Of a DNA stretch of 43,016 nucleotides, positions 24,001 through 43,016 are shown piece by piece. The first letter of the stretch is position 1, and the number at the start of each line of letters is the position of its first letter. This DNA is from Utricularia gibba (taxonomy: Eukaryota > Plantae > Magnoliophyta): assembly GCA_002189035.1 (NCBI GenBank), contig NEEC01000054.1, positions 1 to 43,016 on the forward strand, in the 5' to 3' direction. The notes below the pieces were generated by a model. That model was not told the origin of the DNA and did not search any database. It was given only the letters and a program-made list of their open reading frames with translations. The position numbers were made by a program, and so were the translations under genes.

Positions 24001-25403
24001 TCGCTCAACAAATGTGGGGTGCACGTGACATCCCAATTTCAGCAAATGCATCATGATTTTCGTCGAGTGGGCCCATGAGCCCGACCGAACCCGGGGCCCG
24101 GGCCAAGGGCCCCTCGAGAGCGCCCGCCTCAATATGAGGAGGTGTTCCTTTGAAAACCATATACGCGTCTCGTCACAACCCAACGTTAATAAATGCATCA
24201 CTTTTTTTGGCGCGCTACTGCTGACTTTGGGCCCGAGTTCGGCACGACCTCCGGCTCGATCAGGGTGCCCCACCGAGAGCTCCTCCTTAAGTATAAAGTG
24301 TGTTGTTGAAAAAAACCGTTTGCGGTTCTCGTGACATCCTAACTTCAACAAATGCATCACGATTTTCGTCGAGTCGGACGGGACCGGGCTCCCGGGGCCC
24401 GGACGAGGCGCAGCGCCCGCTCCCCTCCCCCCAAAACTAGAAGGTGTTCCATGGAAAACCATTTAGGCGGCTCGTGACAACCCAAAGTTAATAAATGCAT
24501 CACTTTCTTTGCCGTGCTACAATGACTTTACGCTCGAGCCTGGTACGACGTATGGGAAGATTCGAGTGCCCCCCGAGAGCGTCTCCACAAGTATAAAGCG
24601 TGTTGTTGAAAAAACCGTGTTGGGTGCACGTGATATCCTAATTTCAACAAATGCGTCACGATTTTCGCCGAGTGGGACCAGACTGGGCTCATCAGCCAGA
24701 CCGAACCCGGGGCCAAGCCAAGGGCCCCTCGAGAGCGCCCCCCACAAAACTAGATGGTGTTCCATGAAAAAAAGTTAGGCGGCTCGTGATAACCCAACGC
24801 TAAGAAATGCATCCATTTTTTCGCCGGGCTAAAACTGACTTTGGGCTCATGCCCGGCGCGACCCCCAGCCCGTGTGCATACGCAGCAGCAGCACGAGGCC
24901 ACATGGGATTGGTTTATGCCCGCGTGCTCGAGCAGCAGCCACAAGGCCATACGGGCGTGGAACAAAGCAAACAATCATAAAATACAATAAGCCAAAAATA
25001 AAAAATAAAATTGATAAACCCTTGGTTCGGTTCGGGCCCAATCAAAACCCGTCGGGTTAACCCATTCGGGTCATGCAAACTGTAATACCCAGAATTTCAT
25101 CGGGTTGGGTCCGAACCTGAATGGATCCAACCCAGGCCCATCTCTAATCATAATCATATGATATAGGTTTATTAAATTATAAATAATTGAAATACATTAT
25201 TTATTAAACCGTAGGATAACTATGAAAGCTTTTTTGACTTAATTATTATCATTTCATCCTCAGTTGTACTTTGGATGGAGTGTGTGTTTTTACTTTAGTC
25301 ATTTTAATTAGCATTCGATCCTTGGTTATGATTTAGATCATATTTACTATTTTTTTTATTTTAATATTGTTTTTAGCATTCGAACGTTAGGTTTAATATT
25401 TTT

Positions 25404-25595
25404 TACCTACATGACCAGTAAGGGGTTAGTCTATTGTAACACAATTCCTATGCGCAATGACAAGGAAAGAAGAAATCCGTGGTTCGTGTAACATTCTGTG
25501 TGGTCCTAAGACCCTCCCTTGATCCTCTATGGTCGATGCCCTTTGATTGAACCAGAATGTTCTCCCTTGATTGGCTTTTCAGCCCTTGTATGCCC
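25404..25595 (-). repeat. Left copy of 192-bp inverted repeat (inverted duplicate of LTR 3' end + flank)
   Basis: Reverse complement of 26761-26952 at 190/192 identity by manual comparison. Both mismatches read T in the left copy where the complement of the right copy has C. Confidence 0.96.
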
Positions 25596-26010
25596 CTTGG
25601 AAGAGGATCACTCGACAAGGGAAGTTTGGCAAATTAGGGCCACGCTACATCGGACCATACGAAGTGACAGCTCGGGTGGGCGAGGTAGCCTACTGACTTG
25701 CACTACCCTCAAACATGGGAGCAATGCACGATGTGTTCCACATCTCGCAACTCAGGAGACATGTCCCTCGCCAGATATAGATGTAAGGGCACATGACGTC
25801 GTGCTCAGAGAGAACCTAACGTACCAGAACAAGCCCTTGAGGGTGCTGAACCGCAAGATTACCATGGTAAATCGAAGACCGACATGGTGGGTGAAGGTAC
25901 AATGGATGGGGTGTGGCGTAGAAGAATCTACGTGGGAGAAAGAAACAGCCATGAAAGCTGAGTACCCAACATTCATGGAAGATGAAGTTTCGGGGACGAA
26001 ACTTCTTTAA
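25596..26010 (+). mobile_element. Ty3/gypsy chromovirus (Tekay/Del-like) pol 3' fragment: integrase GPY/F tail + chromodomain, pseudogenised
   Basis: Reads PWKRITRQGKFGKLGPRYIGPYEVTARVGEVAY*LALPSNMGAMHDVFHISQLRRHV, then frameshifts into ENLTYQNKPLRVLNRK...WVKVQWMGCGVEESTWEKETAMKAEYPTF. One in-frame TGA and one frameshift. The 5' part of the element is absent. Confidence 0.93.
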
Positions 26011-26021
26011 GTGGGGGAGTT
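26009..26021 (+). other. Polypurine tract of the retrotransposon
   Basis: Purine-rich AAGTGG...GAG tract directly before TGTAAC, preceded by TTTCGGGGACGAAACTT, resembling the TTTCGxGGACGAAA motif typical upstream of chromovirus PPTs. Confidence 0.85.
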
Positions 26022-26921
26022 TGTAACGATGTACGAAACAAGGTACCAATGCTACCCTCAAACTCGTCTGATTGATGTTCATATGTGATGGAAAGGAAGC
26101 TCCAGACGAAGGGATGGCCGGGAGTAGTTCACAAGAAGCCAAGAAGGGCGAAAGAGGGTGTGCAGGAGGGCTGTCGCATAGAGGTTGGCGCGCAGAATTG
26201 CGCGCGCGCGCGCGCGGGTCATTGGTCGCAACATGTGCGAAACACGGGACCAGCAGAGCGAATTAAGGCATGATTGGAACAAGATATGACAAGGACTCAG
26301 TCAAGGGAAGTTACCGAATCAAGGGGAGCCAAATGTGGAAATTATGGTCATGGGGAAAGGTTCCCCAATTCAAGGGACCAAATCTGTGAGATATGGAAAT
26401 ATCCATACCAAGGGGGAGGCTAACCTCTATATAAGCGGAAGGGTCGAAGCTCTCCTTCCTCCCCCACTCCCCACACCACGAAGGCGCAAGGCTGAAGGGC
26501 TCAAGGCTAGACGAACATCCATAAGAGTGGGAGGGAAGGAGGTTCTTCGATCCGGTAAGGGGATTTCCATACGGTTTAGTGACTAACATGGGTGTTCAAT
26601 GTGTCAAGGGCACAGGTTACGGTATTGAACGTATCAGGGGCACAGAACATGAGTCAGAGGTCATAGGGGTCGATGCAATCAAGGGGAGGGAAGGGGAGAT
26701 GGCCACCCCAACCCAAAGGCAATGCGCTTGCGCGGGATTTACGCCACTCAAGGAGCCTTCGGGCATACAGGGGCTGAAAAGCCAATCAAGGGAGAACATT
26801 CTGGTTCAATCAAGGGGCATCGACCATAGAGGATCAAGGGAGGGTCTTAGGACCACACAGAATGTTACACGAACCACGGATTTCTTCTTTCCTTGTCATT
26901 GCGCATAGGAATTGTGTTACA
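26022..26921 (+). mobile_element. 3' LTR (900 bp) of the gypsy element
   Basis: Starts TGTAAC immediately after the PPT and ends GTTACA (6-bp terminal inverted repeat, TG...CA). TATATAAG at 26428-26435, (CG)8 at 26201-26216, recurring ATCAAGGG motif. No 5' LTR is present, so the TSD cannot be verified. Confidence 0.88.
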
Positions 26922-26952
26922 ATAGACTAACCCCTTACTGGTCATGTAGGTA
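26761..26952 (+). repeat. Right copy of 192-bp inverted repeat (last 161 bp of LTR + 31 bp flank)
   Basis: Reverse complement of 25404-25595. Confidence 0.96.
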
Positions 26953-27069
26953 CTGCTGGAGATGAGTCATTGGAAGGGGCGGATGGCGAGGGTGGAGTGG
27001 CTGAGTAGTGGAGTCCTAGGCGAACAACGCGACTAGAGCGCAACCCCTTACAATAGACTAACCCCTTAC

Positions 27070-28557
27070 GTGTGAACCACGCCCGTGTGGCATGGCATTG
27101 TAATGTATACACGTTCTAAATTGCTCCTAACGGCCGAACGCTAATTAAGATTTAAAATAAATGAATATGCACTCGATCCAAAGTATACCTAAGGATCTAA
27201 GGCTAATAAAAATATGAAAGTAAAAAATATACGCTCGATCCGCAGCATACCTAACGTTCGAATGCTAAAAACAATATTAAAATAAAAAAATAGTAAATAT
27301 GATCTGAATCATAACCAAGGATCGAATGCTAATTAAAATGACTAAAGTAAAAACACACACTCCATCCAAAGTACAACTGAGGATCAACTGGCAATAATTA
27401 AATCACAGAAGCTTTCTTAGTTATCCTACGGTTTAATAAATAATATATTTCAATTATTTATAATTTAATAAATATATATCATATGATTATGATTAGGGAT
27501 GCACCTGGGTTGGATCCATTCAGGTTCGGACCCAACCTGATGAAATTCTGGGTATTACAGGTTGCATGACCCGAACGGGTTAACCCGACGGGTTTTGATT
27601 GGGCCCGAACCGAAACAAGGGTTTATCAATTTTATTTTTTATTTTTAGCTTATTGTATTTTATGATTGTTTGCTTTGTTCCACGGCCGTATGGCCTTGTG
27701 GCTGCTGCTCGAGCACGCGGGCATAAACCAAGCCCATGTGGCCTCGTAGTGCTGCTGCGTATGCACACGGGCTGGGGGTCGCGCCGGGCATGAGCCCAAA
27801 GTCAGTTTTAGCCCGGCGAAAAAAGTGATGCATTTCTTAACATTGGGTTATCATGAGCCGCCTAATTTTTTTTCATGGCACACCATCTAGTTTTGCGGGG
27901 GCGCTCTCGAGGGGCCCTTGGCTTGGGCCCCGAGTTCGGTCTGGCTGATGAGCCCAGTCTGGTCCCACTCGACGAAAATCGTGACACATTTATTGAAATG
28001 AGGATATCACGTGCACCCAACATGGTTTCTTCAACAACACGCTTTATACTTGTGGAGACGCTCTCGGGGGCACTCGAATCTGCCCAGAGGTCGTACCAGG
28101 CTCGAGCCCAAAGTCATTGTAACACGGCAAAAAAAGTGATGCATTTATTAACTTTGGGTTTTCACGAGCCGCACAAATTGTTTTCCATGGAACACCTTCT
28201 AGTTTTGGGGGGAGGGGGGCGGGTGCTCTCGAGGGGCACCTAGTTCGGTCCCCGTGTTCGATCTGGCTCGGGAGCCTGGTCCAGTCCGACTCGATGAAAA
28301 TCGTGACGCATTTGTTGAAGTTAGGATGTCACGAGAACCCCACACGGTTTTTTCAACAGCACACTTTATACTTAACAAGGAGCTCTTGGGGGCACCCGGA
28401 TCGGACCAGAGGTCTTGCCAAACTCGGGCCCAAAGTCAGTTGTAGCCCGCCAAAAAAAGTGATGCATATTTTAAGGTTGGGTTGTCTCGAGACGCGTATA
28501 TTGTTTTTAAAGGAACACCTCCGCGTATTGTGGCGGGTGCTCGCGAAGGGCACTTGG
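27070..28557 (-). repeat. Diverged partial satellite monomer, reverse orientation (block R0, ~0.6 monomer)
   Basis: Reverse complement of the monomer from the VNTR edge through the left palindrome arm and the 300-bp sub-repeats, with many transitions. Similarity ends at ...GAAGGGCACTTGG (28557). Confidence 0.93.
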
Positions 28558-28661
28558 ATAGTGTCAGGGTTAAAATACGACCCTTGTTTTCGGTTGAAGA
28601 GCAGTCCACCTATTCATCGGTTTGTGTGTGGTACTGGATCACCAGGGCTGTCTTCATGGGT

Positions 28662-28712
28662 TGGGCCTCTGATGTTGCTTCTTGGGCCAGCTGTCTTGAG
28701 TGTTGAGGCCCA
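28662..28712 (+). promoter_or_regulatory. Three site II elements (TGGGCY) in the NOP56 proximal promoter
   Basis: TGGGCC at 28662-28667 and 28683-28688, GGCCCA at 28707-28712, ~175-225 bp upstream of the ATG. Site II clusters are characteristic of plant ribosome-biogenesis and translation gene promoters. Confidence 0.6.
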
Positions 28713-28885
28713 AGGATGTTAAGGCCTTTCTCACAGTCTAATCGAGGGCTGCTTCTCCTGGAGGGAGCAGAGGTGTGCGGCGTTCTTCTTCGCGAGTTGA
28801 GACTTCCCGGATCTTCGCTGCTCCATCATTCGCTGACAGGACACCGCAGCCTCCAGTAAGCCACTGCCTTCTCGGGCCGTCGTCG

Positions 28886-31447
28886 ATGGCGCTGTACGTG
28901 CTGTACGAGTCAGCCTCGGGATACTCCTTGTTCGTGGCTAAGGAGATTGATGAAATCAGTCAGAATACAGAAGCTGTTCGCGGGTCTATTGCGGACCTGA
29001 ATCGTTTTGGAAAGGTGGTGAATTTGGTTGCCTTTAGTCCCTTCGCATCCGCGCTCGACGCTCTTAACCAGTGCAATGCAGTCTCTGAAGGTAGGTTCCA
29101 AAGGCTAAACTTGAATAAGAACTTAGTAAACTTCAAGGAGCAAGAGTTGGTTTTTCTATATTCTAAGCATGCTTGTTTTGAATATTACGTGCTTGTTTGG
29201 AAATGAATGCCGTGTTTACAGGTTCTGAATATTACGTGCTTTCCTTTCTCCTCATCAATACTGATATTTTTTTTTCCATGTACCATTATGGTTGAAGGTG
29301 GACTCGTGCCCTGTTATTGCAGATATTTCCATTTAATTTAGTAGTATGCCTGGAACTGTACTGTAACTAAAGATTCTGCTAGCTTAATGTGGGAATATAC
29401 AGCATGCATATCAATTGCTGTACATATGGTTTTGAGTACATATTAACTGTGCCTACGTGGTATTCCTTTTTGGGTGGCTAGGTCAGATGACACCTGAATT
29501 AAGGAGTTTCTTGGCGTTAAATTTGCCTAAAGTGAAGGAGAGCAAGAAACAAAAATTCAGCCTTGGAGTTGCAGAGCCGAAGCTGGGATCACATGTTTAT
29601 GAAGTGACTAAAATTCCATGCCAAAGCAATGAGTTTATTCTGGAGATTATCCGAGGAATTCGGCTACACTTTGCTCAGTTCATCAAAAACTTAAAGGTTG
29701 GCCACTTTTTTCTGTATATTGAGCTAATTTTCAAGGGTATATTTTATCCATTTATACTTTTCGTATTGCTTTGTGTTGAACAACGGCAGCCTGGAGATTT
29801 AGAGAAAGCACAACTTGGTCTAGGGCACAGCTATAGCAGGGCAAAGGTCAAGTTTAATGTGAATCGTGTGGACAATATGATTATTCAGGCGATTTTTTTA
29901 TTGGACACCCTAGATAAGGACGTCAATTCCTTTTCGATGAGAATAAGGTTGGTGCTTTCCTTTCATGATGCTGTCTGCATAATTGCAGTTGCATCAAAGG
30001 CATTAACTATACTTCATTTTGTACTGGTATTGGATGTCTAGTGTAGTTGTGCTTTATGTTTGGTGGACTGTATCAATGCATTCTATCATGATTTTTATAG
30101 GGAATGGTACTCTTGGCATTTTCCCGAGTTAGTGAAAATTGTCACCGACAATTATTTGTACGCAAAAGTTGCAAAGTATGTGGAGGACAAATCTAAGTTG
30201 TCGGAAGACCATTTATCAGGTCTCACAGACATAGTTGGGGATGAAGACATGGCAAGGGAAATCACAGAAGCTGCCAAAGCATCCATGGGTATGTTTGTTA
30301 AGATGTGCCATGTATAGGTCATTGCTTATGATTGTCATGCCGTCTATATTGTGTTGTCTACCATGGATCTATGCTTACATGGATTTCTATTGTCAGGTCA
30401 GGATCTCTCACCCGTCGATTTAATTAATGTAAAGCTATTTGCACAGAGGGTGATGGACCTTGCCGAGTACAGAAAGAAGCTTCATGACTATTTGGTTACC
30501 AAAATGAATGATATAGCCCCCAATTTGGCTGCATTGATTGGTGAAGTAGTTGGTGCCCGTTTAATTTCACATGCTGGTAGTCTTACGAACTTGGCCAAGT
30601 GCCCCTCATCAACTCTTCAGATTCTTGGTGCAGAGAAAGCTCTGTTCAGGTATATTTCTCAAGGTGCCTATTTCTTCTTGGCTGCTATTGATACATGGTT
30701 TTTTTTTTTTAATGTATGTTTTCTTTGTTATCTCCAGGGCATTAAAAACACATGGGAACACTCCAAAATATGGACTTATTTTTCACTCTTCATTCATTGG
30801 TCGGGCAGCTGCTCGAAATAAAGGACGCATGGCTCGTTATCTTGCCAACAAATGCTCCATTGCGTCTCGTATTGACTGTTTCTTGGGTAACTAGGCATTC
30901 CCTCTCTGAATTGTTTATTAGATCTCATGTGTAACGAATTAACCGTGTAGATAAATATGCATCTGTATCACAGAGAAGAATACAAATGCTTTTGGAGAGA
31001 AGCTACGGGAACAAGTGGAGGAGCGATTAGACTTTTATGACAACGGTGTTGCTCCTAGGAAGAATATTGACGTGATGGTGTCTGCTCTAAAAACTGTCGA
31101 TATTAAAGGTTTTGATTACTCTCTTTGAAACTATTACTTGATGCAGGCAGCCGTTTGTTGGTTGATCCCTTTTCATTAACATTAGCAGGTGGACATATTT
31201 TTATCCTAACCCCCCATTTGTTTTGATATCCACAATATGCAGAGAATGGGGAGGCAACTGAACCAGTGAAGGGGGGAATGTTGAGGAGGACAAGCCCGCA
31301 ACTGAGAAGAAGAAAAAGAAAGAGAAGCGAAAACGAGATGCAGAGGAAGATGAAGCAGCAAAAGTGGAGTCTAATGGAATTGGTAGTGAAACTGTAGGCA
31401 TGAAAAAGAAGAAGAAAAAAAAAGGCAAAGACAGGAGGACAGACTAA
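28886..31447 (+). CDS. NOP56: Nucleolar protein 56 (box C/D snoRNP core protein), 8 coding exons; apparent -1 frameshift in last exon
   Basis: Exons 28886-29090, 29482-29696, 29790-29947, 30101-30288, 30397-30649, 30738-30886, 30974-31108, 31243-31447. All introns are GT-AG with consistent phases. Translation includes [13 protein letters not shown]..., [99 protein letters not shown] and [16 protein letters not shown], matching plant NOP56 as recalled. As read, the ORF stops at 31395-31397 (485 aa). The K/E-rich tail ending at 31445-31447 (502 aa) needs one more G in the run at 31271-31276. Confidence 0.95.
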
Positions 31448-31699
31448 TGCAGGGCACGGGTCGAGTCCCGACGGTGAACTCGTCGGGTCAATATGTACTG
31501 GGCGGATTCAGACGGGTCGACCTGTCATGGGTCAAACCTCTACCCGACCCGTAACGAGTTAGACTCGTCATCTACAGTTTTTTTTTTTGTTTTTTGGTGA
31601 CTTGAACTTGAAAGTAGATGATTAATGACTTGTCCTTCGCCTCTCTCTCCATGCTCAGGTTCTCACACGACGATGCTCATGTTCTCACACCACGTCGTT

Positions 31700-32501
31700 T
31701 TACCCTTGTCAGAAGTGTTTGATTAGCGTTTTACTTATATATAACATGTTTGTAATTTAAAGTAATTCAAAATCTAATAATAAGAATAATAAAATGTGAT
31801 ACATTGTTTTTGTTAAAAAAAATTTCAATATTATATTAAAGATAAAAAAATGAAATAAATTTCATGTATAAATATCAAACATATGATAAGATGGAATATC
31901 AAAATTAGATTATATAAAAAATTTATTATTAATATATATTGTATATCAAAAGAAATTATTATATAAGACAAGTGAGTATTTATAATATTCATGTATCAAA
32001 AGAAATCATTAAATTTTAAAACTTAAATCCAAAATAAAATAAAAAAAACTAAATCCTAAATATTAAAACCTATTAAAATTGAAATGTTACATTCCAAATT
32101 CAAAATATATTGTTGAGGTAAAATATAAAAAAAATCTAATTTTTTTTATGATTAGCAAAATATTTATAAAAGTAGGGTAAATTGTAAAGGGAATAAAAAA
32201 GTTGAGGTATTTGCCCTGTTTGCACATGAATCACTAGAATGCAATTAGTACTTCATATTAAATTAAAACATTTAAAAATCTCAACACCAATGATAACATG
32301 ATAGGAGATCAGTATACTACTTCAAGTAATGTGTGAATCATCATCATCATTCGCCTCATCATATGTAGTAATATTATGCAACCTTAATTCTGCCTAAAAA
32401 AGTCAGAAGATTGAGGTATTAAGTAGATAAAAACAGCACTGAAAAATTATAAAAATATATTTTGAAATTATATAAAACTATTTAGCCAAAGAGTGGATTG
32501 A
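31700..32501. other. Very AT-rich unique spacer between NOP56 and the satellite
   Basis: Low-complexity A/T-rich sequence with no ORF in the track and no recognisable element termini. Confidence 0.5.
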
Positions 32502-35500
32502 TTCGGTCTTTAGATATGATTCGGATCGAGTGGATATGATTTATTTTAAACTTGTATTAACGCTCGATCCTTAGGAGCAATTTGGATCGTGTCTACATTG
32601 CAAGGGCACACGGGCGTGGGTTGTGCGTAAACCACGCCCGTGTGGCCTTGTGGTGCTGCAGCGTGTGGGCACGGGCGTGGTTTATGCGTAAACCACGTCC
32701 GTGTGGCATGGCATTGTAATGTATACACGTTCTAAATTGCTACTAACGGTCGAACGTTAATTAAGATTTAAAATAAATGAATATGCACTCGATCCAAAGT
32801 ATACCTAAGGATCTAAGGCTAATAAAAATATGAAAGTGAAAAATATACGCTCGATCCGCAGCATACCTAACATTCAAATGCTAATAAAAAATATTAAAAT
32901 AAAAAATACGCGCTCGACCCGCATTATACTTAAGGATCGAATGATAATAAAAATATTTAAAGTAAAAAAATAGCAAATATGATCTGAATCATAACCAAGG
33001 ATCGAATGCTAATTAAAATGACTAAAGTAAAAATACACACTCCATCCAAAGTACAACTGAGGATCAAATGGTAATAATTAAGTCAAAGAAGCTTTCACAG
33101 TTATCCTACGGTTTAATAAATAATGTATTTCAATTATTTATAATTTAATAAACCTATATCATATGATTATGATTAGAGATGGGCCTGCGTTGGATCCATT
33201 CAGGTTCGGACCCAACCCGATGAAATTCTGGGTATTACAGTTTGCATGACCCATGGGGTTGTCTTTCTGTTCAACCCGAACGGGTTAAACCCTACGGGTT
33301 TTGATTGGGCCCGAACCGAACCAAGGGTTTATCAATTTTATTTTTTATTTTTGGCTTATTGTATTTTATGGTTGTTTTTCTTTTTTTCCACAGCCGTATG
33401 GCCTTGTGGCTGCTGCTCGAGCACGCGGGCATTAACCAAGCCCATGTGGCCTCGTGGTGCTGCTGCGTATGCACACGGGCTGGGGTCGCGCCGGGCATGA
33501 GCCCAAAGTCAGTTTTAGCCCGGCGAAAAAAGGGATGCATTTCTTAGCGTTGGGTTATCACGAGCCGCCTAATTTTTTTTCATGGAACACCATCTAGTTT
33601 TGTGGGGGGCGCTCTCGAGGGGCCCTTGGCTTGGGCCCCGGGTTCGGTCTGGCTGATGAGCCCAGTCTGGTCCCACTCGGCGAAAATCGTGACACATTTG
33701 TTGAAATTAGGATGTCACGTGCACCCAACATGGTTTTTTCAACAACACGCTTTATACTTGTGGAGACGCTCTCGGGGGCACTCGAATCTTCCCATACGTC
33801 GTACCAGGCTCGAGCCCAAAGTCATTGTAGCCCGGCAAAGAAAGTGATGCATGTATTAACTTTGGGTTGTCACGAGCCGCCTAAATGGTTTTCCATGGAA
33901 CACCTTCTAGTTTTGGGGGGAGGGGAGCGGGCGCTGCGCCTCGTCCGGGCCCCGGGAGCCCGGTCCCGTCCGACTCGACGAAAATCGTGATGCATTTGTT
34001 GAAGTTAGGATGTCACGAGAACCGCACACGGTTTTTTTCAACAACACACTTTATACTTAAGGAGGAGCTCTCGGGGGGCACCCTGATCGGGACGGAGGTC
34101 GTGCTGAACTCGGGCCCAAAGTCAGCAGTAGCGCGCCAAAAAAAGTGATGCATTTATTAACGTTGGGTTGTGACGAGACGCGTATATGGTTTTTGAAGGA
34201 ACACCTCCTCGTATTGAGGCGGGCGCTCTCGAGGGGCCCTTGGCTCGGGCCCCGGGTTCGGACGGGCTCATGGGCCCACTCGACGAAAATCATGATGCAT
34301 TTGTTGAAATTGGGATGTCACGTGCACCCCACATTTGTTGAGCGAGGACGGACAATTTTAGAGACTCGATGAGCCATTCTTCGATCAGCGTCCTACTATC
34401 TAGTTCAAACTCAAAGTCACATTATTCTTGCACAATTTCGTATGAATGAATATGGGATATGATCCGTTGGAAGCCCAAGTGTTAGAGAATTTTACTGAAT
34501 CTGCTGAGCAAGGGGTTGTGAGTTCATAACAGCTGTTGAAACCTCTCCAGGGTGGTGTACGTGGCGTGATGACCTTTCTACAATGACAAAAAAAATATTT
34601 TTATAATCATGTGATATACGTTTATTAAAATATAAATAATGTAAATACGTTAGTTATTAAAGCATATACTACATGTGAAAGTTTCTTAGTTTTTAATTTT
34701 ATTAGCATTCGACCCTTAGTTATACTTTGGATGGAGTGTGCATTTTTATTTTAATCATTTTAATTAGCATTCGATCCTTAGTTATGATTCCAATCGAGTG
34801 TATATTTTTTATTTGAACGATTCTATTTGCATTCGATTCTAAGATATGATGCGGATCGAGCGTATATTTTTTTTTTTAATATTTTTATTAGCTTTCGGTC
34901 TTTAGATATGATTCGGATCGAGTGGATATGGTTTACCTGAAACTTGTGTTAACGCTCGATCCTTAGGAGCAATGTGGAGCGTGTTTACATTGCAAGGGCA
35001 CACGGGCGTGGGTTGTGCGTAAACCACGCCCGTGTGGCCTTGGGGTGCTGCAGCGTATGCACACGGGCGTGGGTTGTGCGTAAACCACGCCCGTGTGGCC
35101 TTGTGGTGCTGCAGCGTGTGGACACGGGCGTGGTTTACGCGTAAACCACGTCTGTGTGGCATGGCATTGTAATGTATACACGTTCTAAATTGCTCCTAAC
35201 GGTCGAACGCTAATTAAGATTTAAAATAAATGAATATGCACTCAATCCAAAGTATACCTAAGGATCTAAGGCTAATAAAAATATGAAAGTGAAAAATATA
35301 CGCTCGATCCGCAGCATACCTAACGTTCGAATGCTAATAAAAAATATTAAAATAAAAAATACGCGCTCGACCCGCATTATACTTAAGGATCGAATGATAA
35401 TAAAAATATTTAAAGTAAAAAAATAGCAAATATGATCTGAATCATAACCAAGGATCGAATGCTAATTAAAATGACTAAAGTAAAAATACACACTCCATCC

Positions 35501-38500
35501 AAAGTACAACTGAGGATCAAATGGTAATAATTAAGTCAAAGAAGCTTTCACAGTTATCCTACGGTTTAATAAATAATGTATTTCAATTATTTATAATTTA
35601 ATAAACCTATATCATATGATTATGATTAGAGATGGGCCTGCGTTGGATCCATTCAGGTTCGGACCCAACCCGATGAAATTCTGGGTATTACAGTTTGCAT
35701 GACCCATGGGGTTGTCTTTCTGTTCAACCCGAACGGGTTAAACCCTACGGGTTTTGATTGGGCCCGAACCGAACCAAGGGTTTATCAATTTTATTTTTTA
35801 TTTTTGGCTTATTGTATTTTATGGTTGTTTTTCTTTTTTTCCACAGCCGTATGGCCTTGTGGCTGCTGCTCGAGCACGCGGGCATTAACCAAGCCCATGT
35901 GGCCTCGTGGTGCTGCTGCGTATGCACACGGGCTGGGGGTCGCGCCGGGCATGAGCCCAAAGTCAGTTTTAGCCCGGCGAAAAAAGGGATGCATTTCTTA
36001 GCGTTGGGTTATCACGAGCCGCCTAATTTTTTTTCATGGAACACCATCTAGTTTTGTGGGGGGCGCTCTCGAGGGGCCCTTGGCTTGGGCCCCGGGTTCG
36101 GTCTGGCTGATGAGCCCAGTCTGGTCCCACTCGGCGAAAATCGTGACACATTTGTTGAAATTAGGATGTCACGTGCACCCAACATGGTTTTTTCAACAAC
36201 ACGCTTTATACTTGTGGAGACGCTCTCGGGGGGCACTCGAATCTTCCCATACGTCGTACCAGGCTCGAGCCCAAAGTCATTGTAGCCCGGCAAAGAAAGT
36301 GATGCATGTATTAACTTTGGGTTGTCACGAGCCGCCTAAATGGTTTTCCATGGAACACCTTCTAGTTTTGGGGGGGAGGGGAGCGGGCGCTGCGCCTCGT
36401 CCGGGCCCCGGGAGCCCGGTCCCGTCCGACTCGACGAAAATCGTGATGCATTTGTTGAAGTTAGGATGTCACGAGAACCGCACACGGTTTTTTTCAACAA
36501 CACACTTTATACTTAAGGAGGAGCTCTCGGGGGGCACCCTGATCGGGACGGAGGTCGTGCTGAACTCGGGCCCAAAGTCAGCAGTAGCGCGCCAAAAAAA
36601 GTGATGCATTTATTAACGTTGGGTTGTGACGAGACGCGTATATGGTTTTTGAAGGAACACCTCCTCGTATTGAGGCGGGCGCTCTCGAGGGGCCCTTGGC
36701 TCGGGCCCCGGGTTCGGACGGGCTCATGGGCCCACTCGACGAAAATCATGATGCATTTGTTGAAATTGGGATGTCACGTGCACCCCACATTTGTTGAGCG
36801 AGGACGGACAATTTTAGAGACTCGATGAGCCATTCTTCGATCAGCGTCCTACTATCTAGTTCAAACTCAAAGTCACATTATTCTTGCACAATTTCGTATG
36901 AATGAATATGGGATATGATCCGTTGGAAGCCCAAGTGTTAGAGAATTTTACTGAATCTGCTGAGCAAGGGGTTGTGAGTTCATAACAGCTGTTGAAACCT
37001 CTCCAGGGTGGTGTACGTGGCGTGATGACCTTTCTACAATGACAAAAAAAATATTTTTATAATCATGTGATATACGTTTATTAAAATATAAATAATGTAA
37101 ATACGTTAGTTATTAAAGCATATACTACATGTGAAAGTTTCTTAGTTTTTAATTTTATTAGCATTCGACCCTTAGTTATACTTTGGATGGAGTGTGCATT
37201 TTTATTTTAATCATTTTAATTAGCATTCGATCCTTAGTTATGATTCCAATCGAGTGTATATTTTTTATTTGAACGATTCTATTTGCATTCGATTCTAAGA
37301 TATGATGCGGATCGAGCGTATATTTTTTTTTTTAATATTTTTATTAGCTTTCGGTCTTTAGATATGATTCGGATCGAGTGGATATGGTTTACCTGAAACT
37401 TGTGTTAACGCTCGATCCTTAGGAGCAATGTGGAGCGTGTTTACATTGCAAGGGCACACGGGCGTGGGTTGTGCGTAAACCACGCCCGTGTGGCCTTGGG
37501 GTGCTGCAGCGTATGCACACGGGCGTGGGTTGTGCGTAAACCACGCCCGTGTGGCCTTGTGGTGCTGCAGCGTGTGGACACGGGCGTGGTTTACGCGTAA
37601 ACCACGTCTGTGTGGCATGGCATTGTAATGTATACACGTTCTAAATTGCTCCTAACGGTCGAACGCTAATTAAGATTTAAAATAAATGAATATGCACTCA
37701 ATCCAAAGTATACCTAAGGATCTAAGGCTAATAAAAATATGAAAGTGAAAAATATACGCTCGATCCGCAGCATACCTAACGTTCGAATGCTAATAAAAAA
37801 TATTAAAATAAAAAATACGCGCTCGACCCGCATTATACTTAAGGATCGAATGATAATAAAAATATTTAAAGTAAAAAAATAGCAAATATGATCTGAATCA
37901 TAACCAAGGATCGAATGCTAATTAAAATGACTAAAGTAAAAATACACACTCCATCCAAAGTACAACTGAGGATCAAATGGTAATAATTAAGTCAAAGAAG
38001 CTTTCATAGTTATCCTACGGTTTAATAACTAATGTATTTCAATTATTTATAATTTAATAAACCTATATCATATGATTATGATTAGAGATGGGCCTGGGTT
38101 GGATCCATTCAGGTTCGGACCCAACCCGATGAAATTCTAGGTATTACAGTTTATATGACCTATGGGGTTGTCTTTCTGTTCAACCCGAACGGGTTAAACC
38201 CTACGGGTTTTGATTGGGCCTCAACCGAAATAAGGGTTTATCAATTTTATTTTTTATTTTTGGCTTATTGTATTTTATGATTGTTTGCTTTGTTCCACGG
38301 CCGTATGGCCTTGTGGCTGCTGCTCGAGCACGCGGGCATAAACGAAGCCCATGTGGCCTCGTGCTGCTGCTGCGTATGCACACGGGCTGGGGTCGCGCCG
38401 GGCATGAGCCCAAAGTCATTTTTAGCCCGGCGAAAAAAAGGATGCATTTCTCAGCGTTGGGTTATCATGAGCCGCCTAATTTTTTTTCATGGAACACCAT

Positions 38501-38856
38501 CTAGTTTTGTGGGGCGGGGGGGGGGGGGGCGCTCTCGAGGGGCCCTTGGCTTGGGCCCCGGGTTCGGTCTGGCTGATGAGCTCAGTCTGGTCCCACTCGG
38601 CGAAAATCGTGACACATTTGTTGAAATTAGGATGTCATGTGCACCCAACACGGTTTTTTCAACAACACGCTTTATACTTGTGGAGACGCTCTCGGGGGGC
38701 ACTCGAATCTGCCCAGAAGTCGTACCAGGCTCGAGCCCAAAGTCATTGTAGCCCGGCAAAGAAAGTGATGCATGTATTAACGTTGGGTTGTGACGAGACG
38801 CGTATATGGTTTTTGAAGGAACACCTCCTCGTATTGAGGCGGGCGCTCTCGAGGGG
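32502..38856 (-). repeat. Satellite block R1, reverse orientation (~2.7 monomers)
   Basis: Starts TTCGGTCTTTAGATATGAT (reverse complement of monomer position ~1645-1663). Period 2453-2456 (33246 to 35699; 34902 to 37358). Confidence 0.97.
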
Positions 38857-38880
38857 ACCGGGCCCGGGCCCCTCGAGAGC
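38845..38880. repeat. 36-bp near-perfect palindrome at the reverse-to-forward strand switch
   Basis: GCTCTCGAGGGG-A-CCGGGCCCGG-G-CCCCTCGAGAGC is self-complementary except for one A/G pair. Confidence 0.95.
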
Positions 38881-41800
38881 TAAAAATAAAAAATAAAATT
38901 GATAAACCCATGTTTCGGTTCGGGCCCAATCAAAACCCGTAGGGTTTAACCCGTTCGGGTTGAACAGAAAGACAACCCCATAGGTCATGCAAACTGTAAT
39001 ACCCAGAATTTCATCGGGTTGGGTCCGAACCTGAATGGATCCTACCCAGGCCCATCTCTAATCATAATCATATGATATAGGTTTATTAAACTATAAATAA
39101 TTGAAATACATTATTTATTAAACCATAGGATAACTATGAAAGCTTCTTTGACTTAATTATTACCATTTGATGCTCAGTTGTACTTTGGATGGAGTGTGTA
39201 TTTTTACTTTAGTCATTTTAATTAGCATTCGATCCTTGGTTGTGATTCAGATCATATTTACTATTTTTTTACTTTAAATATTTTTATTATCATTCGATCC
39301 TTAAGTATAATGCGGGTCGAGCGCGTATTTTTTATTTTAATATTTTTTATTAGCATTCGAACGTTAGGTATGCTGCGGATCGAGCGTATATTTTTCACTC
39401 TCATATTTTTATTAGCCTTAGATCCTTAGGTATACTTTGGATCGAGTGCATATTCATTTATTTTAAATCTTAATTAGCGTTCCACCGTTAGGAGCAATTT
39501 AGAACGTGTATACATTACAATGCCATGCCACACGGGCGTGGTTTACGCACAACCCACACCCGTGTGCCCTTGCAATGTAAACACGCTCCACATTGCTCCT
39601 AAGGATCGAGCGTTAACACAAGTTTCAAGTAAACCATCTCCACTCGATCCGAATCATGTCTAAAGACCGAAAGCCAATAAAAATATTAAAATAAAAAATA
39701 TACGCTCGATCCGCATCATATCTTAGAATCGAATGCAAATAGAATCGTTCAAATAAAAAATATACACTCGATTGGAATCTTAACCAAGGATCGAATGCTA
39801 ATTACAATGATTAAAATAAAAATGCACACTCCATCCAAAGTATAACTAAGGGTCGAATGCTAATAAAATTAAAAACTAAGAAACTTTCACATGTAGTATA
39901 TGCTTTAATAACTAACGTATTTACATTATTTATATTTTAATAAACGTATATCACATGATTATAAAAATATTTTTTTTGTCATTGTAGAAAGGTCATCACG
40001 CCACGTACACCACCCTGGAGAGGTTTCAACAGCAGTCATGAACTCACAACCCCTTGCTCAGCAGATTCAGTAAAATTCTCTAACACTTGGGCTTCCAACG
40101 GATCATATCCCATATTCATTCATACGAAATTGTGCAAGAATAATGTGACTTTGAGTTTGAACTAGATAGTAGGACGCTGATCGAAGAATGGCTCATCGAG
40201 TCTCTAAAATTGTCCGTCCTCGCTCAACAAATGTGGGGTGCACGTGACATCCCAATTTCAACAAATGCATCATGATTTTCGTCGAGTGGGCCCATGAGCC
40301 CGTCCGAACCCGGGGCCCGAGCCAAGGGCCCCTCGAGAGCGCCCGCCTCAATACGAGGAGGTGTTCCTTCAAAAACCATATACGCGTCTCGTCACAACCC
40401 AACGTTAATAAATGCATCACTTTTTTTGGCGCGCTACTGCTGACTTTGGGCCCGAGTTCAGCACGACCTCCGTCCCGATCAGGGTGCCCCCCGAGAGCTC
40501 CTCCTTAAGTATAAAGTGTGTTGTTGAAAAAAACCGTGTGCGGTTCTCGTGACATCCTAACTTCAACAAATGCATCACGATTTTCGTCGAGTCGGACGGG
40601 ACCGGGCTCCCGGGGCCCGGACGAGGCGCAGCGCCCGCTCCCCTCCCCCCCAAAACTAGAAGGTGTTCCATGGAAAACCATTTAGGCGGCTCGTGACAAC
40701 CCAAAGTTAATACATGCATCACTTTCTTTGCCGGGCTACAATGACTTTGGGCTCGAGCCTGGTACGACGTATGGGAAGATTCGAGTGCCCCCGAGAGCGT
40801 CTCCACAAGTATAAAGCGTGTTGTTGAAAAAACCATGTTGGGTGCACGTGACATCCTAATTTCAACAAATGTGTCACGATTTTCGCCGAGTGGGACCAGA
40901 CTGGGCTCATCAGCCAGACCGAACCCGGGGCCCAAGCCAAGGGCCCCTCGAGAGCGCCCCCCCACAAAACTAGATGGTGTTCCATGAAAAAAAATTAGGC
41001 GGCTCGTGATAACCCAACGCTAAGAAATGCATCCCTTTTTTCGCCGGGCTAAAACTGACTTTGGGCTCATGCCCGGCGCGACCCCCAGCCCGTGTGCATA
41101 CGCAGCAGCACCACGAGGCCACATGGGCTTGGTTAATGCCCGCGTGCTCGAGCAGCAGCCACAAGGCCATACGGCTGTGGAAAAAAAGAAAAACAACCAT
41201 AAAATACAATAAGCCAAAAATAAAAAATAAAATTGATAAACCCTTGGTTCGGTTCGGGCCCAATCAAAACCCGTAGGGTTTAACCCGTTCGGGTTGAACA
41301 GAAAGACAACCCCATGGGTCATGCAAACTGTAATACCCAGAATTTCATCGGGTTGGGTCCGAACCTGAATGGATCCAACGCAGGCCCATCTCTAATCATA
41401 ATCATATGATATAGGTTTATTAAATTATAAATAATTGAAATACATTATTTATTAAACCGTAGGATAACTGTGAAAGCTTCTTTGACTTAATTATTACCAT
41501 TTGATCCTCAGTTGTACTTTGGATGGAGTGTGTATTTTTACTTTAGTCATTTTAATTAGCATTCGATCCTTGGTTATGATTCAGATCATATTTGCTATTT
41601 TTTTACTTTAAATATTTTTATTATCATTCGATCCTTAAGTATAATGCGGGTCGAGCGCGTATTTTTTATTTTAATATTTTTTATTAGCATTTGAATGTTA
41701 GGTATGCTGCGGATCGAGCGTATATTTTTCACTTTCATATTTTTATTAGCCTTAGATCCTTAGGTATACTTTGGATTGAGTGCATATTCATTTATTTTAA

Positions 41801-42963
41801 ATCTTAATTAGCGTTCGACCGTTAGGAGCAATTCAGAACGTGTATACATTACAATGCCATGCCGCACGGACGTGGTCTACGCGTAAACCACGCCCGTGTC
41901 CACACGCTGTAGCACCACAAGGCCACACGGGCGTGGTTTACGCACAACCCACCCCCGTGTGCATACGCTGCAGCACCCAAGGCCACACGGGCGTGGTTTA
42001 CGCACAACCACGCCCGTGTGCCCTTGCAATGTAAACACGCTCCACATTGCTCCTAAGGATCGAGCGTTAACACAAGTTTCAGGTAAACCCTATCCACTCG
42101 ATCCGAATCATAACTAAAGACCGAAAGTTAATAAAAATATTAAAATAAAAAATATACGCTCGATCTGCATCATATCTTAGAATCGAATGCAATTAGAATC
42201 ATTCAAATAAAAAATATACACTCGATTGGAATCATAACCAAAGATCGAATGCTAATTAAAATGATTAAAATAAAAATGCACACTCCATCCAAAGTATAAC
42301 TAAGGGTCGAATGCTAATAAAATTAAAAACTAAGAAACTTTCACATGTAGTATATGATTTAATAACTAACGTATTTACATTATTTATATTTTAATAAACA
42401 TATATCACATGATTATAAAAATATTTTTTTTGTCATTTTAGAAAGCTCATCACGCCACGTACACCATCCTCGAGAGGTTTCAACAGCTGTTATGAACTCA
42501 CAACCCCTTGCTCAGCAGATTCTTTAACACTTGGGCTTCCAACGGATCATATCCCATATTCATTCATACGAAATTGTGCAAGAATAATGTGACTTTGAGT
42601 TTGAACTAGATAGTAGGACGCTGATCGAAGAATGGCCCATCGAGTCGCTAAAATTGCCCGTCCTCGCTCAACAAATGTGGGGTGCATGTGACATCCCAAT
42701 TTCAACAAATGCATCATGATTTTCGTCGAGTGCACCCATGAGCCCGTCCGAACCCGGGGCCCGGGCCAAGGGCCCCTCGAGAGCGCCCGCCTCAATACGA
42801 GGAGGTGTTCCTTCAAAAACCATATACGCATCTCATCACAACCCAACGTTAATAAATGCATCACTTTTTTTGGCGCGCTGCTGCTGACTTTGGGCCCGAG
42901 TTCGGCACGACCTTCGGCCCTATCAGGGTGCCCCCCCCCCCCGAGAGCTCCTCCTTAAATATA
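38881..42963 (+). repeat. Satellite block F2, forward orientation (~1.7 monomers), ending at the telomere
   Basis: GTGTATACATTACAATG at ~39507 and ~41840. The terminal monomer is more diverged and is cut inside a 300-bp sub-repeat. Confidence 0.97.
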
Positions 42964-43016
42964 GGGTTTAGGGTTTCGGTTTAGGGTTTAGGGTTTAGGG
43001 TTTAGGGTTTAGGGTT
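42960..43016 (+). repeat. Arabidopsis-type telomere repeat (TTTAGGG)n
   Basis: TATAGGG, TTTAGGG, TTTCGG, then (TTTAGGG)x5 + TT to the window end. The G-rich strand points toward the end, as expected at a right chromosome terminus. Only 57 bp are visible. Confidence 0.93.

Follow-up and report, generated by a model that had tools for sequence, protein, structure and literature searches.

In human cases of inverted duplication with terminal deletion, the duplicated arms are separated by spacers of 766-70,466 bp, and the junctions carry 2-8 bp of inverted microhomology or short insertions derived from nearby sequence (PMC3907307). In yeast, fill-in synthesis by DNA polymerase delta from a fold-back produces a hairpin-capped chromosome; this turns dicentric before repeat-mediated events stabilise it (PMC10622511). 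Here, we describe a comparable structure in Utricularia gibba, in a stretch of 43,016 nt of contig NEEC01000054.1 (hereafter, the window). The window is a plant chromosome end, most of which is filled by a satellite with 2.39-2.46-kb monomers; eight TTTAGGG-type repeats (42962-43016) form its terminus. The satellite changes strand twice, and the first switch lies in a chromovirus remnant next to a NOP56-like gene. We consider it probable that this switch arose by fold-back repair of a break in the chromovirus integrase, with priming in the element's own long terminal repeat (LTR) followed by homologous joining to the forward satellite array.

Structure of the first strand switch

The core of the first switch is an inverted repeat of 192 nt, the arms of which match at 190 positions (98.96%) and mismatch at two. 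The arms enclose 1165 nt of single-copy DNA that is unique in the window (coordinates of all features are collected in Table 1). Each arm comprises the terminal 161 bp of the LTR together with 31 bp of flanking DNA. As the arm sequence is absent from the rest of the window, the match between the arms is not due to chance. The spacer joins the right arm without a break, both lying within one 900-bp LTR, and it is continuous with this arm only. The locus thus presents two features of a fold-back inverted duplication, namely inverted arms derived from one sequence and a single-copy spacer continuous with one of them. The spacer runs on into the LTR only on the right, and the left arm abuts the integrase tail, an unnatural neighbour for it; this identifies the right arm as the source and the left arm as its copy. 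The presence of both LTR and flank in the arms identifies the event as a chromosomal rearrangement and not a product of retrotransposition.

The left arm ends at a novel junction inside the integrase, designated J1. Base 25596 (C) is unable to pair with base 26760 (C), so the inverted repeat stops at J1. The conserved proline codon CCT of the PWK motif starts at 25595, which implies microhomology of at least 1 nt, and, judging by the letters at the junction, up to 4 nt within GCCC are possible. No pre-existing inverted repeat of at least 10 nt that could have guided a fold-back was found at the two ends of the spacer. A 10-nt match between 25590-25599 and 26811-26820 was considered as a guide and set aside, being merely the GGGGCAT motif that is repeated in the LTR.

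The region from 25595 to 25777 matches the Pfam profile SH3_Tf2-1, the C-terminal SH3 domain of integrase, from approximately profile position 13 of 64, and nothing integrase-like is present upstream of 25595. An in-frame stop codon interrupts the domain at 25694, and a second one is located at 25778. A weak match to the Pfam profile Chromo follows in a shifted frame (25774-26007, with the frame ending at 26010), and a polypurine tract, read from the sequence, lies at approximately 26011-26019, directly 5' of the LTR. Taken together, the remnant is a dead fragment of a chromovirus (Ty3/gypsy). The LTR terminus is overlapped by the first copy of an exact 22-nt direct repeat, TTACAATAGACTAACCCCTTAC (26917-26938 and 27048-27069). 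The two copies enclose 109 bp, located between the LTR end and the satellite, that match nothing else in the window and may represent an older small insertion with a duplicated target. This feature is older than the inverted duplication, as the left arm holds its first 14 nt.

Between the LTR part and the satellite part of the duplication, 296 bp of the right side have no counterpart on the left, where the 11-mer TTAATATTTTT stands instead. The satellite portion of this right-only segment (27066-27248) is 95-99% identical to the array monomers. The 11-mer occurs at 23 further exact sites in the window, all within the 62-bp subrepeats of the satellite, of which it is a standard motif. It also matches the right arm at 10 of 11 positions at 27208-27218, inside the skipped 296 bp. 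One reading of the filler is that two jumps left it behind as a templated island.

The satellite arms and the forward array

The satellite DNA flanking the 192-nt repeat was duplicated as well. We aligned both satellite arms with 14 other monomer copies and counted the shared events by hand. Eight variants, comprising three deletions and five single-base changes, were common to both arms and found in none of the 14 other copies, whereas other pairs of copies exclusively shared at most three variants each. These results agree with an initial annotation of the window, which had reported the 192-bp inverted repeat with a 1165-bp spacer, the abrupt opening of the spacer inside the integrase, a left arm short of about 300 bp with an 11-nt filler resembling the monomer, and flanking satellite copies united by private variants (a 25-bp deletion, a deletion of about 60 bp, and the GTGTGTGTTTTT and AATATTGTTTTTAGC motifs). 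The inverted duplication is therefore real as a structure.

Comparison of the left and right satellite by windowed BLAST and multiple alignment revealed that the left arm is a mosaic. Two of its tracts resemble the right arm, with two differences in 140 positions (25253-25392) and one in 53 (25026-25078), and include all departures of the right arm from the array consensus. The patch between them (25079-25252) differs from the right arm at 15 of 174 positions; at 13 sites, it agrees with the array consensus against a private state of the right arm. Divergence between the arms is thus uneven: 15/174 in the patch versus 5/385 in the faithful tracts and the LTR arm (Fisher p = 5e-5). The specific left-right similarity is patchy in the satellite and ends by approximately 24993, with ordinary sequence of the forward array, F1, further left. 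Left of approximately 24100, where a mirror image would place the NOP56 gene, there is satellite. In other words, the specific mirror similarity spans no more than about 0.4 kb, is mosaic, and gives way in register to the main array, a pattern that is compatible with repeat-mediated secondary resolution without being proof of it.

The private deletions and single-base changes were found in none of the 10 F1 monomers, which means that the copy did not give rise to the forward array by amplification. The in-register transition suggests that F1 was joined to the copy by homology. The initial annotation had proposed outward copying from the LTR, seeding or joining the forward array. The direction of copying, with the left arm as the copy, follows from the continuity of the right arm with the LTR, and joining is favoured by the transition in register. 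Seeding was rejected for lack of the private variants in F1. Simple outward copying holds for the two faithful tracts and fails in the patch and left of 24993, where the sequence is of the main-array type.

The faithful tracts have diverged by about 1.3% (five differences). Assuming commonly used plant rates of 7e-9 to 1.3e-8 per site per year, the first inverted duplication would be roughly 0.5-0.9 million years old, an estimate derived from these five differences only. Three satellite differences could be oriented by the array consensus, and all three are on the copy (the left arm), a weak hint at error-prone synthesis.

The second strand switch and the chromosome end

The forward array next to the telomere, F2, mirrors the reverse array R1: F2 from 38883 corresponds to R1 from 38260, and the spacer of about 0.6 kb is continuous with R1, placing the copy on the telomere side. 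About 1.6 kb of the arms are free of mismatches, and we therefore regard this switch as the younger of the two. The polarities are opposite, as the copy lies on the centromere side in the first switch and on the telomere side in the second. This copy extends for 4.1 kb before it reaches the TTTAGGG repeats. A succession of fold-back junctions that alternate in polarity and end in a healed telomere is one mark of a breakage-fusion-bridge series, and the two switches and the telomere fit successive events of this type. In such a two-round bridge reading, the left arm of the first switch would later have been shortened by recombination between direct satellite repeats.

The telomere repeats start inside a satellite monomer, at approximately position 1829 of the 2455 positions of the reference, as would be expected from de novo telomere addition at a broken end. 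Across the second-switch region (34700-42963), identity between the arms is 97-100%, and 38842-38877 forms a short GC-rich palindrome. Two variants that are otherwise rare (equivalents of 24915 and 25132) occur in the last R1 monomer (37575-38405) as well as in both arms of the first switch; this monomer also has a cluster of private changes of its own close to the second switch.

Other features of the window

Satellite blocks were delimited against one reference monomer. The island between the reverse-oriented blocks encodes NOP5NT and Nop domains (Pfam) in an intron-containing gene, which is therefore NOP56-like. The satellite coordinates on its two sides do not correspond, being approximately 1637 on the left versus approximately 930-985 on the right, so the gene is not a simple insertion into one monomer. 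The fragment R0, located between the LTR and the gene, shows 87-94% identity to the array along most of the fragment, and its private changes become more frequent toward 28557. It is an old edge fragment of the satellite, with divergence growing toward the gene. R0 is itself uneven: 27150-27269 is 99% identical to forward-array monomers, and 27385-27561 only 91-94%, which suggests earlier conversion patches in the edge fragment as well.

Table 1. Features of the window (positions refer to the 43,016-nt stretch).
Feature	Position	Strand	Remarks
Forward array F1	1-25383	+	About 10 contiguous monomers in register, 91-99% identity to the reference monomer
F1, main-array type	1-24992	+	Joined in register to the copied arm; private variants in none
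Left satellite arm	24993-25392	+	Inverted copy of 27249-27647; mosaic
Shared single-base changes	25053, 25346		
Shared deletion	25056/57		1 bp
Shared deletion	25067/68		25 bp
Shared single-base change	25286		GTGTGTGTTTTT motif
Shared deletion	25356/57		62 bp (one subrepeat)
Shared single-base changes	25369, 25372		AATATTGTTTTTAGC motif
Non-satellite stretch	25393-27065		
11-nt filler (possible templated island)	25393-25403	+	TTAATATTTTT
Left inverted-repeat arm	25404-25595	-	Inverted copy, 190/192 complementary to 26761-26952
J1	25595-25596	.	LTR-internal position joined to integrase tail; GCCC (25592-25595) is a possible microhomology
Spacer (putative fold-back loop)	25596-26760	+	SH3 tail, chromodomain, polypurine tract, first 739 bp of the 3' LTR
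3' LTR	26022-26921	+	900 bp, ends TGTAAC...GTTACA, read from sequence
Right inverted-repeat arm (source)	26761-26952	+	Runs on from the rest of the LTR
Right-only segment	26953-27248	+	113 bp unassigned DNA and 183 bp satellite in register with the following sequence
Reverse edge fragment R0	27066-28557	-	0.6 monomer, between LTR and NOP56 gene; template of the left arm
Unique 3.9-kb island	28558-32501		NOP56-like gene
Reverse array R1	32502-38842	-	
Forward array F2	38878-42963	+	

Origin of the first strand switch

We infer the following course of events from the present arrangement. A dead chromovirus would have resided in a reverse-oriented edge monomer of the subtelomeric satellite, beside the NOP56 gene, and a double-strand break would have occurred in its integrase region. 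The 3' end, at 25596 or at most 4 nt leftward, would have paired with its own strand 1165 nt away in the 3' LTR through at most a few bases of microhomology and primed synthesis outward. This priming step could have been a fold-back or, equivalently, a U-turn template switch. Synthesis would have duplicated 161 bp of LTR together with 31 bp of flank in inverted orientation, jumped over 296 bp while leaving the 11-nt templated island, and then continued along the adjacent satellite. Homologous recombination between the outer end of the copy and the forward array would have resolved the structure, generating the patchwork hybrid monomer and, with it, the strand switch. The intermediate may have been a hairpin-capped or dicentric breakage-fusion-bridge chromosome, or a run of break-induced replication. 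In the length of its spacer and in its junction features, the locus agrees with published fold-back inversions (PMC3907307, PMC10622511). Of the initial proposal that a break in the retroelement was repaired by folding back into its own LTR, fold-back-type copying and joining are supported, and seeding of the array is not.

Several observations weigh against this course. The mirror extends only a short way: past about 0.4 kb, the sequence on the left is main-array-like and lacks a copy of NOP56, which means that simple fold-back with replication would require either a subsequent homologous deletion or an early template switch. The F1 monomers are only about 97.5% identical to those of R1, which speaks against a recent mirroring of R1 by F1; F1 may instead have been captured from elsewhere as a separate array, or have come from a single long replication run with multiple switches. 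The microhomology at J1 is putative, and the junctions are known from this one assembly.

An identical architecture would result if sister chromatids or homologues had fused, with staggered breaks in the integrase and the LTR ligated head-to-head, without fold-back priming, to start a breakage-fusion-bridge cycle. The opposite polarity of the second switch and the telomere cap fit bridge cycles, and a junction microhomology of 0-4 nt is compatible with end joining; strictly, end joining and fold-back priming cannot be told apart from a fossil junction. Still, a fusion requires two independent breaks 1.2 kb apart and a separate event to account for the 296-bp deletion and the 11-nt island, only 192 bp away, and published sequenced cases favour fold-back priming (PMC3907307). 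We therefore regard such a fusion as unlikely.

The two switches could also stem from a single break-induced replication run with several template switches. A broken end in the forward array would have used satellite homology to invade the reverse edge monomer of a donor chromosome end, where 0.4 kb were copied with slips. After a U-turn at J1, copying would have proceeded backward for 13 kb to another U-turn at 38.8 kb, and a telomere cap would have been acquired last. The mosaic at a homologous entry point, the 296-bp jump, and the two opposite U-turns are all readable as one such path. It is the difference in age between the palindromes, with 5/385 differences in the first and none over about 1.6 kb in the second, that makes a single run improbable.

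Palindromic chimeras are a known artefact of long-read sequencing, and a fold-back chimeric read or a misjoin inside the satellite might mimic the observed arrangement. In that case, the arms would hardly differ by two mismatches in the LTR arm, by base changes present in the left arm only, and by a 296-bp indel, nor be separated by a spacer of 1.17 kb; the junction is, moreover, 17 kb from the contig end. We consider an assembly artefact highly unlikely on account of these substitutions, the indel and the spacer. A simple inversion by recombination between inverted satellite copies was rejected, since 192 bp of non-satellite LTR and flank are duplicated. A product of the retroelement life cycle (autointegration, aberrant reverse transcription or a nested inverted second copy) can be practically discarded, as J1 is located 161 bp inside the LTR and not at its terminus, and the copied block extends 31 bp beyond the LTR end into host satellite with the same private variants.

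Significance and comparison with known systems

The first switch is a natural example from the plant germline, resolved at the nucleotide level, of a near-telomere tandem array gaining a strand switch, probably by copy-back repair and homologous array capture. It also illustrates how quickly such palindromes are eroded, both by loss of DNA close to their centre and by patchy conversion. In combination with the second switch, it suggests that breakage and healing of chromosome ends shaped these subtelomeres. The mechanism is already well established in yeast, humans and cancer, and the value of the locus is that of a clean documented case, not of a new principle.

A bolder proposal would be that the window holds a base-by-base record of a germline fold-back series fixed in a satellite, that the copied arm documents error-prone fill-in, with all five differences of the faithful tracts (three of them orientable) on the derived arm, and that satellite orientation switches in this genome generally arise by this route. 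We regard this generalisation as rather doubtful. If the 192-bp LTR repeat is transcribed by read-through, it might also give rise to a hairpin RNA directed against the chromovirus family.

Three described systems can be compared with the locus. With microhomology-mediated break-induced replication and fork stalling and template switching (MMBIR/FoSTeS), it shares the U-turn junctions, the jump with a putatively templated island, and a possible entry via homologous repeats. Unlike these systems, including duplication-inverted triplication-duplication rearrangements (DUP-TRP/INV-DUP), it has no segment present three times in the window: the left arm and R0, and R1 and F2, are different segments, each present twice. 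The two junctions, moreover, seem to differ in age.

The breakage-fusion-bridge cycle with telomere healing described by McClintock resembles the locus in that two junctions of opposite polarity occur within 13 kb and the last arm is truncated by TTTAGGG repeats inside a monomer. Here, however, the left arm mirrors the right over a short distance only, and the case is known from sequence alone.

Compared with fold-back inverted duplications (PMC3907307, PMC10622511, PMC7467729), the locus differs in being an old germline fossil in a plant satellite, diverged by about 1% and not fresh, with arms that erosion has reduced to 192 bp and a mosaic of about 0.4 kb. In addition, its copy is on the centromere side, so that one has to posit a second cycle or a two-ended repair. 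What it has in common with them are arms flanking about 1 kb of single-copy spacer that runs on into one arm only, a novel junction of little or no homology on the other side, a small insertion that may have been templated locally, a possible repeat-based secondary resolution, and a telomere nearby.

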